From positions 4,836,001-4,900,000 of the forward strand of contig JBLDXI010000042.1 in the NCBI GenBank assembly GCA_047495785.1: DNA of 64,000 nucleotides, given 5' to 3'. Positions 1 to 31,097 of the stretch are shown piece after piece. The notes under the pieces were generated by a model. The model was not told the origin of the DNA. It ran no database searches and saw only the letters and a list, made by a program, of their open reading frames with translations. The translations under genes and the position numbers were made by a program. The DNA comes from Lepidodermella squamata (taxonomy: Eukaryota > Animalia > Gastrotricha). How positions within the stretch are numbered: position 1 is the stretch's first letter; every line of letters begins with the position of its first letter.

Positions 1-2340
1 TCTTCATTTTATCAAGCTATCTTGAATTGGCCGATACATTTGAAATTCCACTCAATATGACTAGTGCGGCAGAGCAGAATGTCTCTTTAGCCAGTCCAAT
101 GCCCCAATATATCGCAGCAGCAAATTACTCTGAAAGTGCTGCTATAAACAAGACAATAGTCACAATAGTGGGATCTGTATCATACGCTGGTGAAATGCCA
201 CTCGGTCCACTTGGTACGAAGACGATTGAACTAGCCCTCGACCGGCTGAAAACAGATAGTCAATGGAATGATCATGGGCAAGAGCTCGTGGTCGAAGCTT
301 TCGATGACGAATGCGTAGATTCAACCAACATCGAACGCATTATTTCAGAGTTTCGGAGAAGCGAGGAAGTGCCAAACCGGCTGCCTATTGTCATAAGCAT
401 GGGCTGTTCTGGGGTAGGGATGCGTACAGTCGCAGAGGTTTCGAAATTCTACAACTACGTTTCGGTAAGTTGCATCTAGATGTAACGCTTGACTGTTTCA
501 ATCATCATTTCTTTGTACAGCTGTGCTACGCTCAGACGTTTCAAGAATGGCCCGAAAATAGGCACAGATTCTCAACGCATTTCCCCTTGGCCGATCGGTT
601 TGATATGCAACATGTTGCAGTGGTTAAATTCATGGTTCAAATGCAGTGGCAGAAACTAGCAATATTGTCTGAATCTTACACTCTCTATGACCAGGTAAGA
701 TACAAGTACTGTAATTTCTAGCCTTCCAAAATATTTTTTCATTTTAGTTGGGCAGCACTCTGTTTCCACGCTTGGAAGCAGCGAACATAAGCCTGATATG
801 GCTGAGAAAGTTTTCCCATGCCGGAGTCTTCGAAGAGGAGATGGAGCCTGCCCTTGACGAGCTGAAGCCTCTGGACCCTAGAATAATTCTAATGGATGCT
901 GATCGCTCGGCTGGAAAACTCTGTTGGATGCATCGGAAGGGACTGTTCGGTCCCAACCTCGTCATTTTCGTTTGGTATTGGTCTGATGTTTATCCGATTC
1001 CGTACGTACCAGACAATATGCTGGATTGGTGTACAGCCGACATGATTTACGAGGTCTGAACTCTATATTATAATTACTCAATGATACTAATGTCACACTT
1101 TCAATCAAAGGTAATGCAGAGCGTTCTATTTTTCGGTGACTCGTCACTAGTCAACATATATGGCCCAGACATTCAAGACTCGACAGGATTTTCAAACAGG
1201 CAATGGGAGGCAGATATGCACGCGAAAATCGATCGGCCGGAAGATGGCGGCTTTTATGGCCACTATCGCTACATTTACTACGACGTCGCGTTGTTTGCTG
1301 GTATGATACTTGGCGCTACTGAATCTGTACTTAGAGCCCGTAAGCCCCAGCGTTGAAATCACCTTTTTCATCAATGATCTTTCGCAATTTCTAGGGAACG
1401 ATACATTGTCTAAACGTTAAAGCTCGTGGCATTGAGAAAGATTTTCCCCCGGTTGATTCGAAGAAATGTTATGTATGTGAGCAAGGAGGATTGCGTTATT
1501 ACATTGGGATGCGCCCTAATGCTGTGCCAAGTGTTCACTCTGCCTATTGGTTCCTTGGAAACCCCTATTGAATGCACAATTATTGCGACATTAGTAGCAA
1601 TCGGCTTATCGGTTTTAAACCTTGGGTTTCTACTGAAAATCGACACTGGAAATACAGAATTAGTGGACCGAGAACCTCTCCGTCGCTCAGTTCGAAGCGG
1701 ACGTAGCGGACAAAGTGCACAAAGCCGAAAAAGCGCCCAAAGCATCGGCCGAGTCTCGATTAGACTAAGCAGGCTGAGCTCCAGAAAAGCAGTGTATGAT
1801 CTTCACTGGCGCAGAATTAGCTGCATTCACGTTGTCATTATTCAAGTACTCATCATTGTCAGTTTGTTCCTCGTCAAAACGCCGTTTGAAGTGATCCCAA
1901 CGCCAAGCGGTGTAGAGGTTGAATCTTTGAATTCTCAGATCAATCTCCAGTTTTTCTCAAGGAATTGCGCATTTTCTCTTGATAACAACCCAGCTGCCGA
2001 GGTGGTTGCTGCACTCGTTGTAGCTTCTAACTTGATGCTCATGCTTCGAACTGCAATTCTATGCTATCGAATACAACTGGTAAGAAATTGAGCATGTAGT
2101 AACAATCGAATAGTGTCTATTGTTGTTTCCTACCAGAGAAGAAAGAAAGCTGTCATTCCTAGGGAGCTGACTATAACGTGTTGGCTATTCGGTTGCATGG
2201 TTTCGTTTGCTGCTGCTTCTGGTCTCATTTGTCTTCTGATGCCGCTGAATGCTCCTCTTGTAGTCAGTTTTACTAACATTCTGCTCGTTACTACCATTTC
2301 ACTTGTCACAATTTTCACCCACTGGTGTCGCTACAATTGA
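1..2340 (+). pseudogene. Class C GPCR (GABA-B-like VFT + 7TM) copy 1, probable pseudogene; 5' end lies upstream of the window
   Basis: Exons ~<1-464, 521-694, 748-1053, 1111-1339, 1395-~2079, ~2137-2340 with GT-AG introns matching the paralogs. Exon 5 reads NDTLSKR* then jumps to the region after TM1: about 390 bp present in copy 2 (~8145-8535) are missing and a stop is created. Confidence 0.75.
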
Positions 2341-2360
2341 TACGTCACTTCACATGCTCT

Positions 2361-5260
2361 AAATATAGAATTGTCCCCAGAAATATAGGTCGAGTAGCTT
2401 TGACAATTCGATATTTTACGGTATAACATTCGTAAAACGTTCATATCTGAACTCGCCGCACTCGATTTACTGATCGCAACTCGCCTCCGGCTCGTTCCGA
2501 CTCGTAAATCTCGGGCGGCTCCGTACAGATATAAACGTTTTACTCATGTCATACCATACAAATATAACACTGTGTCTATATTTTTAACCTTGAAACACAA
2601 ATCTATATTTTTTCATACCAAATATAGATTTGAATATGAACTATATTTCTGATCTAAGTATATCTGAAATATAGATTCAGATGTATCTATATTTTTGACC
2701 TGGAAAATCTATATTTTGAATATAGATGCCAAGCCTGTCTAACAGAAAAACACAGGGATATAGTTTTCGCAACGCAATTTATTATGAAAGAAAATGGAGA
2801 AATTCAATTTTGAGAATAATTTAGACGGGGACAGCTTGGCAGGCGGGCTGACAAAATTGGCCGTAGGAATCAGAATTTCTCAGAAAACTCCGGAAAATCG
2901 GGCAGCATTTCGTCCCCGCTGTGCATGAATTCGCAGCGATTCGTGGGTCGGATCGCGCAGAAGATCATCGAACAGGTACGGTCAGCAAGTCGCCTCCATA
3001 GATCGATAGAACGCGCCGCGAACACTGAGCAGAAAATCCAGAAAATCGGACAGCATTTTGACCCAAATTCGCAGAAATCACCACCTTGAAACTTGAACTT
3101 GGAGCACTCTGCCAGCGACAGTTCCGATTCGATCACGTTGAAAACATCGACGTACCAAACACCTTTGCGACGCGCTAGTCTGAAATTGAGCCATTTTCAA
3201 CAACCAGAGATGAAATTCCGACGGACTGCTGTCGACTTTCTTTCATCGCAACCAAACGTTTCGTTCAAATCGAACCAGTTTCTTCGGATTGCAAAGGCGC
3301 ATGGTTTTCGCGAACGTTGATTTCGAAGGAACCAGGTTTCAGGGTTGATGGTTTATCGAACCATTCGGCTTCAATTGCGGCAGCTTTGCCAATCGGAGAA
3401 GAATTCTGGGAGCATTTGTTCGTGAAATTCGAGCAGAATTTCGGCCGGACAGAAAATCGACGTTCAAAACGAGACGAAATTCGAACGAATGAGAAAAATG
3501 AGCGAGAATGCCATTTTTCGATGAAATTTTAAGTTGGATTTTTTATTATATATTATTTTGCGTTGCGAAAAATATAGACACGTGTAATATTTTACGATAC
3601 AACATTCGTAGAAACCTATATTTTCGTGAAGCACTCGTATAGATCGGGTAAAACTCATTCACCTCGTGAAATCTCGTCTCCACTCGCCTGTCGGCTCGTT
3701 CCGCCTCGATTTCACTCGTTTCATTCGTTTTACTCGATCTATATTTCGTGCTTCTCTCAAATATAGATTCCTACTCATGTTATATCATACAAATATAACA
3801 CTGTGTCTATATTTTTAACCTTGAAACACAAATCTATATTTTTTCATACCTCAAATATAGATTTGAATATGAACTATATTTCTGATCTATATCTGAAATA
3901 TAGATTCAGGTGTATCTATATTTTTTACCTGGAAAATCTATATTTTGAATATAGATGCCCATTTCCAAGCCCAATACTTCCGAGGTCTTGAAACAGCTAA
4001 TTCTAACGGAAAAACACAGGGATATAGTTTTCGCAACGCAATTTATTATGAAAGAAAATGGAGAAATTCAATTTTGAGAATAATTTAGACGGGGACAGCT
4101 TGGCAGGCGGGCTGCAAAAATTGGCCGTAGGAACCAGAATTTCTCAGAAAACTCCGGAAAATCGGGCAGCATTTCGTCCCCGCTGTGCATGAATTCGCAG
4201 CGATTCGTGGGTCGGATCGCGCAGAAGATCATCGAACAGGTACGGTCAGCAAGTCGTCTCCTTAGATCGATAGAACGCGCCGGGAACACTGAGCAGAAAA
4301 TCCAGAAAATCGGACAGCATTTTGACCCCAATTCGCAGAAATCACCACCTTGAAACTTGATTGAACTTGGAGCACTCTGCCAGCGACAGTTCCGATTCGA
4401 TCACGTTGAAAACATCGACGTACCAAACACCGTTGCGACGCGCTAGTCCGAAACTGAGCCATTTTCAACAACCAGAGATGAAATTCCGACGGACTGCTTG
4501 ACCTTCTTTCATCGTTACCAAACGTGTCGTTCAAATCGAACCAGTTTCTTCGGATTGTAAAGGCGCATGGTTTTCGCGAACGTTGAACTCGAAGGAACCA
4601 GGTTTCAGGGTTGATGGTTTATCGAACCATCCGGCAGCTTTGCCAATCGGAGCAGAATTCTGGGAGCATTTGTTCGTGAAATTCGAGCAGAATTCCGGTC
4701 GGACAGAAAATCGACTTTCAAAACGAGACGAAATTCGAACGAATGAGAAAAATGAGCGAGAATGAATAGAAAGCCATTTTTCGATGAAATTTTAAGTTGG
4801 ATTTTTTATTATTTATTATTTTGCGTTGCGAAAAATATAGACACCGTGTAATATTTTACGATACAACATTCGTAGAAACCTATATTTTCGTGAAGCACTC
4901 GTATAGATCTCGTAAAACTCATTCACCTCGTGAAATCTCGTCTCCACTCGCCTGTCGGCTCGTTCCGCCTCGATTTCACTCGTTTCATTCGTTTTACTCG
5001 ATCTATATTTCGTGCTTCTCTCAAATATAGATTCCTACTCATGTTATATCATACAAATATAGAATTGTCGCCAAAAATATAGGTCGAGTCGCTATGACAA
5101 TTCGATATTTTACGGTATAACATTCGTAAATCGTTCATATCTGAACTCGCCGCACTCGATTTACTGATCGCAACTCGCCTCCGGCTCGTTCCGACTCGTA
5201 AATCTCGGGCGGCTCCGTACAGATATAAACGTTTTGCTCATGTCATACCATACAAATATA
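2361..5260. repeat. Array of hairpin-containing modules A-C-B-C-B-A joined at AAATATA
   Basis: A = 2361-2566 and 5055-5260 (199-bp period). C+B = 2560-3797 and 3791-5061 (near-identical ~1.25-kb tandem copies). A and B are long imperfect palindromes. Confidence 0.85.
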
Positions 5261-5262
5261 TC

Positions 5263-6157
5263 CAGGGTATTATACCGACCGGTTTTTATTCTAAAAAAAC
5301 CGCCTACCAGTTTAAACCGATTTATACCGGTAATAAACACCGGTTTTTAATGAATTTCAATAATTAAAGGATCTGACCATTGGAGAGTCGAACAACTCGA
5401 ATACCTTAGCTTCCATTGAATTTTCGAGTGTACCACGTTAATGTACGCAAAAAACTGCATAGTTGGATGTGTTACACGACTATTTTCATGAAAATTCGAT
5501 TAAATGCAATAAAGCGATAAAAAATAAAAAAACAGTTAATTATCTCCAGATCTGTGATAGCTATGAAAATTCTGAAAACGGGAATGAGTTCCCCGTGCAA
5601 ACTTTACCCCTCCGGGGTTTCTAAGGGGGATTTTGCGATCAAAAGCCGCGGTTTTGCCGATTCCTTTGAAAAATTTTTTTTTACAATTTTCCTATCACCA
5701 ATTAAAAACCGGAAGTGAATTTTGATTTTGCGATGTTTTCGTTAGTTTTGCGAATTATGTAGAGATATTTGAGTACTAAGGGTAATCCGAGGCGCTGAAC
5801 ACGCTGAGCGCATTTGTTTTCACACTGGAAGCATCGGTTATCGAATATCGATTATCGATTATACGGTGAATGATTGATTTTTGTTCGAATTCTGCCGAAT
5901 CTTACTTGGCAAATGAACCTTCACGCTAAGAATCAAAGCTGATTATCATAACTAATGCAACTCCTGATCTTGTAGCTCAACTTTTTGCCAACACTTTGAA
6001 CTAGGAAGACATACTCCTGCTGATGTCTTACCATCTAACCGTCGGATTTGTGGGTTTACTTAAAACCGCGGTTTTTATTGAACTTGAAAAAAACCGGTTT
6101 ATACCGGCACCGGTGTAAACTGGTAGGAACTGGTTTGAGTTTAAACCGAATACCCTG
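5263..6157. mobile_element. hAT-type non-autonomous element (MITE)
   Basis: TIR CAGGGTATT...AATACCCTG, subterminal AAACCGG-type repeats, perfect 8-bp TSD AATATATC (5255-5262 and 6158-6165). Confidence 0.85.
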
Positions 6158-12828: not shown

Positions 12829-15442
12829 CTTTTCACTTTTTCATTTTGATTAAAACATCACTTTTCATGAGTTGTAACGCGTGCCAAAAACGCTGTGGAA
12901 ACGCCATTTCATGCATTATATGTAACAGCTTATTCCACAATACGTGCATGGGCCTATGTAATACCGATTTCACGACAATAACCAATGCAAATCGGAAGCT
13001 GTGTAAGTCGGAGACTTCTACTTATCAGCCAAAGATCGTCATCATCTGCTCTGAGAAATGCCGTCGACTATTGAACAGTTGGATAGGTCAACACGCAGCG
13101 GCGTCTACAATTTGTTCGAATAAGACCGACAAAGAATCATCGGTTGGCGAGGCTGTAGAGCAGCCCACAGAAGGAAATCCTGTCGCTGAGGCTGAGATGC
13201 ATGCGTGTTCTAAAACGTCTTCGGGTGGGACCGACGAGGAAGCAGTAGGTGGTGATGCCGTCCATCAGCTCGTGGGAGACAAACCTGTCGAGTCTACTAT
13301 GGATTTTGTAGTCGTAAACGAAACTGCTGAGCTGCTTCTCTGCCCCTGTGGTAATGAAGTTTTCGCATTGTGTGTTTGTGGGTGTGCTACGCCGCTTTGT
13401 CATGATCACTTTACCAACAAAAACAATTGCTCTTCCATTGATGAAATGCCGCAATACGCGCGTGCCCCCGAAAAAATAGCTTTTTCTCGTAAATTATTTA
13501 ACGCAAAAAAACGTGAAATTCCTGATATTTCTGACTCGAAAATCTCTGCCTATACTCTGAAAAACAAGCTAAATGATGCCGATGCGCGAAACAAGTTCAA
13601 AGCGGCGGAAAGTTCTTTCAAAAAAGAAATGCTAAAATTTCAGTATCAAAGGGAAAACGATCTTCTGGAAAATGGTTCAGGGAAAAAAATCTTTGAATTT
13701 GTATCAAATTTCTTGAAAGAAAACAAATCGTCTGTGCCCTCAGCGATGAAATCGAAAGAAAAAATTGTCGTTAGCGATTTAGACAAGGCTGAGCTTTTTG
13801 CCGACACTTTCTCTGCGAATTTTAGGCCTTTATCTACGAAGGGGGCCAGTTATAATAACAAGATTACAAATGACTGTCTACAACACATTCAGTTCGACGA
13901 ATATACTGTATCTCTGTATCTCTCCAACTTGAAGCCAAAATTTGGCGGTGGCCCTGACAATCTGCCTCAATTTTTACTTAAAAATCTCGCTACTTCTCTC
14001 TCTGTACCTCTTTCTATCATCTTCAACTCTTCTATGCTCTCAGGTCAGCTACCTGACGTTTGGAAGGTGGCAGATGTTATTCCTATCTACAAGAAAAGCG
14101 GATCTCGGCTGGAAGCTAAAAATTACCGGCCTATCAGTCTTACCAGTAACATCTGCAAATTGCAAGAAAAGATTATAAAAAATATTCTTACTGAGTATCT
14201 GAAAAGAAATAATGTGATACCGCCTAACCAGTTCGGCTTCCTGGAAAAGCGAAATGTTGAACTATTGCTCTTAATCTGTCTCAATAAATTCACGTTCTAC
14301 CGAGACAATAATATACCCGTAGACATAATTTACCTTGATTTGGCGAAAGCCTTCGACTCTGTTCCTATTTTCAAGCTAATAAGTGCTCTTAAGAGCTTCA
14401 ACATATGCGGAAACTTACTCGCGTGGCTAAAGTCGTACCTCTTAGACCGCAAGTTCCGAACTAAAATAGGTAACAGTATGTCAGGTTGGAGAAATGCGAA
14501 CTCAGGTGTGCCTCAGGGCTCAGTTCTTGGACCGCTTCTTTTTATTATATTTCTTATAGCTATCGATATCGACACAAAAGTCGAGTCTCCCTTATTTTTT
14601 TTCGCTGATGACAACAAAGTGTTCAGACCGATTGTGAAAAATGAAGACAAATGTGTTTTGCAAAAAGATCTCGACAACGTCATTTCTTGTTTTAATGAAA
14701 ATGGTCTCGATATAAATTGTGAAAAATGTTGTGTAATGAGAATCGGAGCAAGCGATGAAATCTCGACAGACTATACTATAAATAAGATACCTATTCGCGT
14801 TGTACAGTCTACTAAAGACCTAGGCGTTGTTGTTGATAAGGATCTAAGCTTCACGCAACATTGTGCTACACTTATGAACCGGTGCTCAAGTCTATGCTCT
14901 GCTATTTTGAAGAGTTTCAGATGCAATCGATTAAAGATAATGGCTTTTAAAACTTATGTTTTACCGATTCTGGACTACTGTTCCACTGTGTATAGCCCCT
15001 ATTTTCTCACAACGATCGACAATTTGGAAAAAATACAAGAAAGATTTCTTAAAGCTGTGTTTCCAACCTTGAGCTACGATGATGCGTGCAAACGCTCTGG
15101 TTCACTACGATTAGAACATCGTAGAATTTTACGTGATTTGTTGTTTTGTTTCAAAGCTTACCACAATTTTGTTGATGTCTCTTTTTCATCTTTGTTCGAA
15201 AATTCTACTAACACTAGAAAGGCGAAACACTGCATAGTTCCTTCTAAATGTCGCTCCGATCCCCGAAGATTTTGTATTGGCAACAGAATTAACAAAGTAT
15301 GGAATAAGGTACCAGAATGCATAATTAACTCTCGTACAATTACTGTTTTTAAAAATTATATTTTACAAAACTTGTTGCCTGAACAAAAACAAATCACTGT
15401 GTACACGCGCAACGCGAAACTGCAGTTTTAAATAAATAAATA
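12829..15442 (+). mobile_element. CR1-like non-LTR retrotransposon, compact, single ORF
   Basis: RT ORF ends directly in a (TAAA)n tail; candidate 5-bp TSD AATTA (12824-12828 and 15443-15447); the 3' flank AATTATCGATGA matches the uninterrupted downstream region of GPCR copy 4 (~20721). Confidence 0.85.
12867..15431 (+). CDS. PHD finger + Cys/His cluster + reverse transcriptase ORF (~854 aa)
   Basis: N-terminal CxxC...CxxCxxxFHxxC PHD pattern; RT motifs YRPISLTS, QFGF, YLDLAKAFDSV, GVPQGSVLGPLLF, FADD, KDLGV; C-terminus resembles CR1-type elements (AFKTYVLPILDYCSTVYSPY). Confidence 0.9.
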   Translation: MSCNACQKRCGNAISCIICNSLFHNTCMGLCNTDFTTITNANRKLCKSETSTYQPKIVIICSEKCRRLLNSWIGQHAAASTICSNKTDKESSVGEAVEQPTEGNPVAEAEMHACSKTSSGGTDEEAVGGDAVHQLVGDKPVESTMDFVVVNETAELLLCPCGNEVFALCVCGCATPLCHDHFTNKNNCSSIDEMPQYARAPEKIAFSRKLFNAKKREIPDISDSKISAYTLKNKLNDADARNKFKAAESSFKKEMLKFQYQRENDLLENGSGKKIFEFVSNFLKENKSSVPSAMKSKEKIVVSDLDKAELFADTFSANFRPLSTKGASYNNKITNDCLQHIQFDEYTVSLYLSNLKPKFGGGPDNLPQFLLKNLATSLSVPLSIIFNSSMLSGQLPDVWKVADVIPIYKKSGSRLEAKNYRPISLTSNICKLQEKIIKNILTEYLKRNNVIPPNQFGFLEKRNVELLLLICLNKFTFYRDNNIPVDIIYLDLAKAFDSVPIFKLISALKSFNICGNLLAWLKSYLLDRKFRTKIGNSMSGWRNANSGVPQGSVLGPLLFIIFLIAIDIDTKVESPLFFFADDNKVFRPIVKNEDKCVLQKDLDNVISCFNENGLDINCEKCCVMRIGASDEISTDYTINKIPIRVVQSTKDLGVVVDKDLSFTQHCATLMNRCSSLCSAILKSFRCNRLKIMAFKTYVLPILDYCSTVYSPYFLTTIDNLEKIQERFLKAVFPTLSYDDACKRSGSLRLEHRRILRDLLFCFKAYHNFVDVSFSSLFENSTNTRKAKHCIVPSKCRSDPRRFCIGNRINKVWNKVPECIINSRTITVFKNYILQNLLPEQKQITVYTRNAKLQF

Positions 15443-29442: not shown

Positions 29443-31097
29443 CTATCGAAACCTGCCCAGCACAGCAAGCCCAGCACCGACGAGCGCGAGAAGACCGACT
29501 AATAACCAATGTTCAGCAAGTCGGTCACACGCGGTCGCAAGGCTTTCCTCGCCTATCGATCTCAAATAGTCAGCCACTCTGCGCAAGACGTTCCGCTTGT
29601 GCTCAGCATCTTCAGGTGTCGGATTCGCATCCCCGGGCTCGTTCGACGCGCCGCCCATGAAGCTGGCATGTAATTCAGCTGCTAAATCAGGCGGCAGTAT
29701 TGCCTCAAGGCTGGTTCGGTTTTCATCGAAGAATCGCCGCGTTTGAAGCTCCGCTTTTCGCCTATGTCGATCATGAATTCTCATAAACGATTCATAGCTG
29801 ATCCAAAGATTTGTTGCCGTTTGAGTGCTAATGTTACCTGTAATAAATGAAAGTGAAATTAGCCGGCCGAATTTACGTATTGCCGACAAAACTCGGGAAA
29901 AATGTCGTCAGAAAAATCACTCATCACCTAAAGTACTTGGGTATGGATTTTCGTTTTCCGAATTCGAATCTATCATCGACTGGTGATTTTTTTACTCAGA
30001 AGCTCCAGTAACCCGATGCCACCCCTTTTGATCTCACGCATGTGGAATCTTGACACATCTTTCACTTGAAAATGAGGGTAACGCAGAGCTAGGAATTTTA
30101 CAGGTGTAACCGCAAATTCTAAAAGGCCAAATTCCATGTATTTATACATAAGTTTATTCAAAATTAACCCTAACACTAACCCTAACCCTAACCCTAACCA
30201 GGAAAACCCAAAAAATTCGTGAAATAGCACATTTCATTTTTGAAAATTATGTACAAATAGGCACTTCGTTTTTATAATTTGCTGATTTTCTATTTTCTAG
30301 ACCGAATTGCGTGGTTTTGTCAGTTTTGCTTTTACAGCACTAATAGGCCGAATTTTAGTGGTAAATGGTGCTTTAATCGAGCTATGATTCATATTATAGC
30401 TTGTTGTTGTCGATGTTTTTTTTGCATTTTTTTTCGCGCTGCTCTTCGAGAAAATACGCTTTATGGCCGGATTTGCAATTCGACATTACTAAAGACTGAG
30501 CGTGTCTCTTTAGTCCAATGGCGATGAGAAAACTGTTTAATGGAGTTTGAATGGCGCCATCAAATTAAATTCAAAATTTAAAATTTAATTTAATTTAATT
30601 TAAATTTTGAATTTAAAAATAATAATTGTATGAATAGAAATTCTGCGCGTGACAATAATATAGTACATTATCTTATTTTTTTTATAAAATTGAATAACAA
30701 ATTCTCGTAAAACTTTAACTGACATCGGGCATAGTTTTGATCATCTTTTCCTGATTTTATTGACAGACTGAACATGTTTCATTTGCCAATCGCGTGATAA
30801 CAAAACTTAGCTACCTGTACTTTGGACCGTTTGAACCAGGCCGCCGACGCCGCGTATCGCGTCCTTAACCGTTTTCCAGTTGTCAAGGCTTTCGTCGCGC
30901 AGTATCTCGTCCTCGCCGCTCAGATTTCTCTCGCGGCTCAGCAAGTTGATGTATTGGTCGGTTTTCCTCAAACACGCTGGAATTACGCTTTCAAGTCGCT
31001 GACACATGGCTGTTAATTGAACAGATGGATCGCCTTCTTCCACGGGAGGTTGAATCAGGTCAGCAATTTCAACAGACGGGAAATCACCGTTGCTCAT
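29443..31097 (-). CDS. Unknown helical protein with C-terminal hydrophobic tail, paralog 3
   Basis: Exons 31097-30815 and 29837-29443; ends WLLVGLLALVGAGLAVLGRFR. Confidence 0.75.
30165..30199. repeat. Interstitial (TAACCC)n telomere-type tract
   Basis: About five imperfect TAACCC units inside the intron of paralog 3. Confidence 0.7.

Follow-up and report, generated by a model that had tools for sequence, protein, structure and literature searches.

The window analysed here comprises 64,000 nt from the gastrotrich Lepidodermella squamata (assembly GCA_047495785.1, contig JBLDXI010000042.1, positions 4,836,001 to 4,900,000; C42:4836001-4900000 in the coordinates used below). Its positions 2361-5260 are occupied by an array of four repeat units in the order A / C-B / C-B / A. 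A and C-B are young, gene-less mobile elements, of which each copy has inserted on its own at the short sequence AAATATA. A preliminary description of the array had proposed non-autonomous modules which integrate one by one, in one orientation, at a single fixed core, and this is borne out by the junctions, the composites and the flanks of the copies. As to their origin, we see about an even chance (roughly 50%) that A, C-B and a third family, D, are non-autonomous rolling-circle transposons of the Helitron2/Helentron type (HLE2, "HINE-like").

Composition of the array and its copies in the genome

The heptamer AAATATA is found at 2361, 2560, 3570, 3791, 4833, 5055 and 5254, which are all seven module boundaries of the array. 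When both strands are counted, it occurs 29 times in these 2.9 kb against 0.64 times per kb in the remaining window, a 16-fold higher density. The 9-mer AAATATAGA occurs 20 times within the array (both strands) and is absent from the remaining window. The array had initially been decomposed into A-C-B-C-B-A. The repeat structure and the AAATATA boundaries of that description stand, but C and B are a single element: wherever it was read, C was followed by B, and it was never seen without it, so that 3570 and 4833 lie within an element and are not joints in their own right. The resulting C-B unit has a length of 1.25 kb.

Element A consists of a 50-bp leader (core, 8-bp stem and loop) and a 155-bp hairpin. 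This structure follows from a correction to the earlier description, as A and B each hold a further core in inverted orientation. In A, the hairpin opens with this inverted core, ATATTT (2411-2416), and closes with AAATAT (2565). The first A copy (2361-2566, minus strand) belongs to the subfamily with the leader ...GTCCCCAG... and has its core, or tail, at 2361-2367 and its hairpin at 2411-2565. In its leader, 2368-2375 pairs with 2402-2409 and the loop holds a second AAATATAG. The second A copy (5055-5260, minus strand), with the core at 5055-5061, the hairpin at 5105-5259 and the last core at 5254-5260, is of the subfamily with the leader ...GTCGCCAA... The two copies are 97% alike and of different subfamilies.

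The first C-B copy (2560-3797, minus strand) is composed of C at 2560-3576, with its body at 2567-3569, and B at 3570-3797. A cluster of AAATATAGA motifs is located at 2570-2730, and hairpin B (3587-3796) follows the internal AAATATA (3570-3576) and the short palindrome ACACGTGT. The second C-B copy (3791-5061, minus strand) is of the majority subfamily, with C at 3791-4839 and B at 4833-5061. Its motif cluster spans 3801-3960, its internal AAATATA occupies 4833-4839 and its hairpin B extends over about 4851-5060; behind position 171 of C, it contains about 40 additional bp. The copies repeat with a period of about 1264 bp and share 91-94% sequence identity over C and 99% over B. B is built on the same plan as A, with a leader of 10 nt which contains ACACGTGT and with the inverted core ATATTT at 3587-3592. 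An inverted repeat of 26 bp, in which the cores are included, borders C on its two sides.

In the 121-Mb genome, A (about 200 bp) gave 54 scored matches among at least 253 candidates, nearly all of them full length and with 95-100% sequence identity, whereas the number of candidates was 73 for B and 60 for C. C-B is present in about 40-60 copies. Family D, which is built like A, was found beside A and C-B elements. Arrangements were tabulated across the 60 loci that were read: A is solitary at about 18 places, A/C-B composites occur at 10 independent places, C-B stands alone at about 8 and C-B/A occurs at 5; further arrangements are A/A, A/A/D and copies nested inside C. The invariant module order that had been raised as possible counter-evidence is thus not observed, as the order differs between loci.

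C contains only short open reading frames, and no credible Pfam match was obtained for it. A search of Rfam with both strands of window positions 2200-5500 gave no match at E-values up to 1, and hence no ribozyme or known RNA. A pattern scan of metagenome contigs for relatives yielded only one unrelated chance match. One copy of D carries in its leader, at a TA, an element of about 850 bp (C15:4065427 onward) with inverted ends (CAGGGTGTTCAAG...), which is an ordinary, nested MITE (a miniature transposable element with inverted repeats) of the Tc1/mariner type.

Insertion at AAATATA and strand-biased hairpins

The flanks of solitary copies are unrelated to one another. Once the core is set aside, the ends of the elements are not inverted repeats, and terminal inverted repeats are absent. 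The full copies, about 59 in number, are all oriented alike with respect to AAATATA, which is non-palindromic. One A copy and one C-B copy are nested in other copies of C, and these provide two direct comparisons between a filled and an empty site: a single AAATATA(GA) was present before insertion and one is found on each side afterwards, with the orientation of the insert following that of the site. At least 17 independent end-to-end joints overlap by exactly 7 bp, a single AAATATA being common to both neighbours. Variable flanks at the core, or an ordinary target-site duplication, had been considered beforehand as the finding that would speak against a fixed core. What is seen is AAATATA at every junction and no ordinary target-site duplication.

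At the 3' end on the plus strand, 10 of 59 copies vary in the seventh base of the core, as opposed to 1 of 59 at the 5' end. It looks as if one copy of the core is encoded by the element, while the other is a six-base host site with a preferred seventh base. Of the two outermost AAATATA of the array, the one at 2361-2367, which reads TATATTT on the minus strand, represents either the first A copy's tail or the remaining copy of the host target. The one at 5254-5260 is probably host sequence, given the variability of its seventh base among genomic copies.

Stacked copies belong to different subfamilies and have therefore arrived singly. In the ten A/C-B composites, the sequence identities of the A parts and of the C-B parts are uncorrelated (r = 0.2); in one example, two composites with identical (100%) A copies have C-B copies which are only 96% alike. 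From such separate histories we conclude that young A copies were inserted later at the ends of older C-B copies. A copies were found at the ends of C-B 10 times on one side and 5-6 times on the other, while a single one was found within about 300 internal AAATATAGA sites. The expected number of AAATATA sites in the genome is about 77,000. Element ends are preferred about 100-fold over ordinary AAATATA sites, which implies that more than the 7-mer is involved in recognition.

A and B had been described as long imperfect palindromes with common outer arms and a common centre, in which CTC/CTC mismatches recur. Both features were confirmed. The palindromes fold far better than shuffled sequences on either strand (z -6 to -7.7), and the mismatches are strongly one-sided. 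On the plus strand, 41 distinct hairpins from the three families A, B and D contain 592 T·C mismatches versus 33 of G·A, and 177 A·C versus 43 G·T. The defects consist of CTCG opposite CTCG and are spaced by about 10 nt. On the minus strand, the same defects become tandem G·A pairs (5'-CGAG/3'-GAGC) and G·T wobbles, which a helix can accommodate, and this strand consequently folds better by 6-7 kcal/mol. The positions of the defects are kept between families, and four pairs have changed on both sides between A and D, which is compensatory. Neutral decay of a palindrome would give no such polarity. Evidently, one particular strand is meant to fold as a single strand, and the T-rich tail of the elements is found on the same strand as the better-folding hairpin. 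In one C-B subfamily, of which the junction was read at locus L010, about 55 nt are missing from the outer left arm of hairpin B, with the same break in at least eight copies (C42:189895, C15:511577, C23:939209, C25:1545507, C42:1042422, C42:462812, C3:2119211 and C30:1059876). The full hairpin may thus be dispensable for spread.

Possible rolling-circle origin and alternatives

If the elements are of the HLE2 type, the sense strand of A, C-B and D would be the minus strand of the window. Read on this strand, A opens at its terminus (2565) with the 5' arm; the partner arm extends to 2411, which leaves 50 nt up to the end at 2361. An 8-bp stem-loop is located 7 nt from the 3' end and is followed by the T-rich tail TCTATATTT (TATATTT). 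The element lies directly after (T)ATATTT, a T-rich target. This geometry is that of HINEs, in which subterminal inverted repeats start 2-4 nt from the 5' end and lie 38-60 bp from the 3' end, a palindrome is positioned 8-35 bp from the 3' end, and insertion occurs at T-rich or TT sites with Ts at the boundaries (PMC4067079). The canonical layout of HLE2 likewise has terminal inverted repeats and a 3' stem-loop after the right repeat (PMC11417382). The spacing of the subterminal repeats agrees for A; in C-B, however, about 1 kb separates the partner arm from the end. The stem-loop of A is located beyond the right repeat, an equivalent stem with a G·A pair is found in D, and in B ACACGTGT lies 8 nt from the internal tail. 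Insertion is T-rich, in one orientation and devoid of target duplication as in HLE2, but at a site which is longer and more specific than TT.

HINE and DINE-1 elements share further properties with the families described here, being gene-less, of high copy number, free of target duplications and found in stacked or tandem copies (PMC4067079, PMC11417382). In both cases, a subterminal inverted repeat stands at the 5' terminus and is matched by a second one about 50 nt from the 3' end, a short palindrome is placed a few nt from that end, and the boundaries and the target are T-rich. They differ in that the arms here measure 75-105 nt and fill the whole element, that a fixed 6-7-mer takes the place of TT as target and tail, that regular tandem G·A defects are found on one strand, and that the 1-kb body of C-B follows the right repeat instead of lying between the repeats. 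FoHeli, a Helitron2-type element of Fusarium, has asymmetric terminal inverted repeats, terminal hairpins and the 3' end ATATTTT, and it inserts behind a similar T-rich site (PMC5148889). Self-insertion and multiple termini are known for FoHeli, and a circular intermediate has been proposed (PMC5148889). In contrast to the elements analysed here, FoHeli is fungal, autonomous and 5-11 kb long, it has short repeats, and strong targeting of its own ends has not been reported. A literature search for AAATATA as a transposon target returned nothing relevant.

On the HLE2-type interpretation, each element would start, on the minus strand, directly after a host (T)ATATTT, and its own tail TCTATATTT would form its end. 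An HUH Rep(-helicase) supplied in trans would nick the 5' boundary of the donor, the tail and the target alike, in each case behind the same short sequence, and new copies would land behind a tail-like site in one orientation and without target duplication. Resident copies would offer such a site at both of their ends, next to a hairpin or stem-loop recognised by the enzyme. We propose that it is this combination of site and structure which makes them targets about 100 times as frequently as AAATATA sites of the ordinary kind. The bias towards ends would build head-to-tail stacks with one common core. The long hairpin would represent a lengthened version of the two subterminal inverted repeats, designed so that only the displaced sense strand folds; on that strand, the defects would be stable tandem G·A and G·T pairs. 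Nicking and displacement of the tail-bearing strand would fit the location of tail and better-folding hairpin on one strand. C-B is probably the product of a bypass of B's tail, in which about 1 kb of the DNA downstream was taken up as far as another, similar tail; for Helitrons, tandem insertions, self-targeted insertions and capture by end bypass are on record (PMC5148889). An interior part of C (positions 483-918) has a 74%-identical copy at C10:999773-1000190, with no AAATATA ends and no gene nearby. Part of C thus exists outside the family, and this copy is possibly a captured source. Taken together, the insertion site, the orientation, the separate arrival of the copies, the strand asymmetry and the HINE-like geometry are observed, while the enzyme, the single-stranded intermediate and the bypass origin of C are inferred.

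Several points weigh against this interpretation. The inverted repeats measure 25-75 nt, far more than the 12-16 nt that are usual in HLE2, and the 6-7-nt target exceeds the customary TT in length. The arm-deficient C-B subfamily, which seems to have spread to at least eight places, is awkward if the arm is indispensable as a repeat. Site-specific recombination with a shared core predicts every junction pattern equally well, and leaders or hairpins are occasionally flipped (loci L004, L044, L055 and L058), which would be explained more directly by a recombinase acting on inverted cores. Genes of the required kind are present in the genome, which speaks in favour of the interpretation: profile matches numbered 41 for the Helitron Rep and 6 for DUF6570, a marker of HLE2, some with long open frames, and 73 for PIF1. 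Partners were sought by coordinates among the first 100 of about 210-220 matches per arm. Among the matches listed, no arm has a match to Rep, PIF1 or DUF6570 closer than about 9-18 kb, no Rep-helicase gene with ends of the A or C-B type was found, and two Helitron-like loci on the same contig (C42) have no similarity to A, B or C.

Other observations from this search are the following. At C16:632308-632636, two left arms of the D type face each other at a distance of 305 bp, with no matching right arm among the matches listed. They are the listed arms nearest to a Rep match, located 9 kb from a decayed Rep-helicase (C16:641423-643902, minus strand) and oriented as for a 3' end, a proximity that is compatible with chance. 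One Helitron-like gene cluster (C42:1241242-1259302) has tandem arrays of a 180-bp unit on both sides (17 and 11 copies, 96-100% alike; L062:1242-4421 and L063:7204-9302), which are unrelated in sequence to A, B and C. Two HLE2-type gene sets consisting of DUF6570, Rep and PIF1 (C54:3273238-3277874 and C54:3284036-3288672) lie 10.8 kb apart in the same orientation and are possibly another head-to-tail pair.

The alternative to be considered most seriously, which we nevertheless regard as unlikely, is a tyrosine recombinase, either Crypton-like or acting on a folded single strand in the manner of integrons and their attC sites. A circle with one AAATATA and the hairpin would recombine into AAATATA, with a preference for half-sites at resident ends. 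Such a reaction would account for the single common core of each joint, for the fixed orientation and for the absence of terminal inverted repeats. Half-sites also predict what is observed for targeting, with both resident ends being hot and internal motifs cold, and inversion between inverted cores could have produced the flipped leaders and hairpins. The genome contains a young family of 246-aa frames matching Phage_integrase and DUF3504, with at least 13 copies of near-identical scores (C15:4046653-4047117, C74:138650-139114, C7:4123620-4124084 and at least 10 more), which its sequence assigns to tyrosine recombinases of the Crypton or DIRS type. However, no copy was found beside an arm among the matches listed, except for one A-type arm on C25 at a distance of 3.5 kb, which is compatible with chance. 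Moreover, the joints are devoid of inverted binding sites around the core, unlike the core of a typical recombinase, and the HINE-like spacing of repeat, stem-loop and tail would be left unexplained.

The elements resemble integron arrays in that each imperfect hairpin is flanked by an inverse core on one side and a 7-bp core on the other, that units are joined within the core and that the defects affect one strand. ATATTT and AAATAT bound each hairpin and the mismatches are one-sided, which is a likeness of form only. Integrons are bacterial and require the tyrosine recombinase IntI and an attI platform, and their cassettes carry genes. Here, the window has no recombinase, arrays occur at many loci without a common platform and the units are gene-less. 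To our knowledge, no integron-like system exists in eukaryotes. Cryptons occur in animals, encode a recombinase and lack terminal inverted repeats, and a short identical sequence at their ends is thought to be the crossover site. The elements share with them a short sequence that is identical at both ends and in the empty target, and the lack of terminal inverted repeats, but HUH models have these features in common with Cryptons. Cryptons have not been described with long strand-biased hairpins or with abundant derivatives of 200 bp, and we know of none with hairpins such as these. The preliminary description had favoured the tyrosine-recombinase class. Its comparison with attC is apt with respect to form, but direct support for this class is lacking, with the recombinase family not near the listed arms and no inverted sites at the joints. 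Its statement that the window encodes no recombinase holds, as profile searches for recombinases, Rep, PIF1 and DUF6570 gave no match in C42:4836001-4900000.

It is distinctly improbable, in our estimate, that the elements are not Helitron derivatives at all, but either animal cassettes of folded single strands, with a 7-nt core and an attC-like hairpin, or products of an undescribed animal class of HUH enzymes. In either case, the hairpin studded with tandem G·A pairs would be a signal for strand choice. Less credible still is a different HUH class, such as a Replitron-like single-tyrosine Rep or the logic of IS200/IS605 or IS91. Replitrons have short direct terminal repeats, oriented insertion behind a short target and a terminal hairpin (10.1101/2022.12.15.520654), and here AAATATA is a direct terminal repeat and the hairpins have a single-strand bias. 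Oriented insertion behind a site resembling the element's own end and terminal hairpins on one strand are common to Replitrons, IS200/IS605 and IS91 (10.1101/2022.12.15.520654). Replitrons, however, are reported only from Archaeplastida, TSAR and Cryptista and not from animals (10.1101/2022.12.15.520654), the others are bacterial, and the geometry of the ends differs from all of these while closely fitting HLE2-derived elements. A single-tyrosine Rep of this kind did not turn up in the genome either, although no search aimed at it was made.

A cut-and-paste MITE of a DDE transposase with a sequence-specific 7-bp target-site duplication is very improbable and has already been largely refuted. 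AAATATA on both sides of each copy resembles a duplication, and the clusters of the 9-bp motif in both orientations resemble subterminal transposase-binding sites. Yet the ends without the core are not inverted repeats, about 59 copies share one orientation at a non-palindromic target, and the seventh base is unequal between the presumed duplicates in 10 of 59 copies. A MITE of the Transib type was considered separately for C, the ends of which carry CAC(T/G)GTG, and was rejected: there is no 5-bp duplication, and the inverted repeat continues into the core. Concatemers formed by a parvovirus-like rolling hairpin were also rejected, since the units are direct and not alternately inverted. Simple tandem duplication of one element or an assembly artefact has next to no probability and is regarded as refuted: the C-B repeat has a regular period, but its copies are only 91-94% alike over C, with an indel of about 40 bp and different subfamilies, the A copies likewise differ in subfamily, and at least 17 further loci, with flanks of their own, have identical joints.

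The elements go beyond the published descriptions of HINE, HLE2 and FoHeli in three respects: the fixed tail and target of 6-7 nt, the roughly 100-fold targeting of the element's own ends and the one-strand G·A hairpins. If the HLE2-type interpretation is correct, the families would offer an unusually clear view of how a rolling-circle transposon chooses its target, with one sequence of 6-7 nt being tail, 5' boundary and insertion site, and they would explain Helitron-like head-to-tail arrays and satellite-like blocks. The one-sided G·A/G·T design of the 150-210-nt hairpins is direct evidence at the sequence level that one specific strand has to fold, and makes a single-stranded intermediate testable. 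For annotation, what may be taken for cassette arrays at a fixed core would here be stacked non-autonomous transposons and not host gene cassettes.

Other features of the window

Immediately to the right of the array, positions 5261-5350 look like another small repeat with recurring ATACCG/CCGGTTTTTA motifs. The remaining window contains Ets, AMP deaminase and ankyrin/SOCS exons as well as a reverse transcriptase. The latter is an 861-aa open frame (12846-15431, plus strand) with a reverse-transcriptase domain (RVT_1, E 2e-31), representing a retroelement about 7.6 kb downstream of the array end at 5260. At 30165-30199, TAACCC, which is complementary to the telomere unit TTAGGG, forms a short interstitial run of 5.8 copies.

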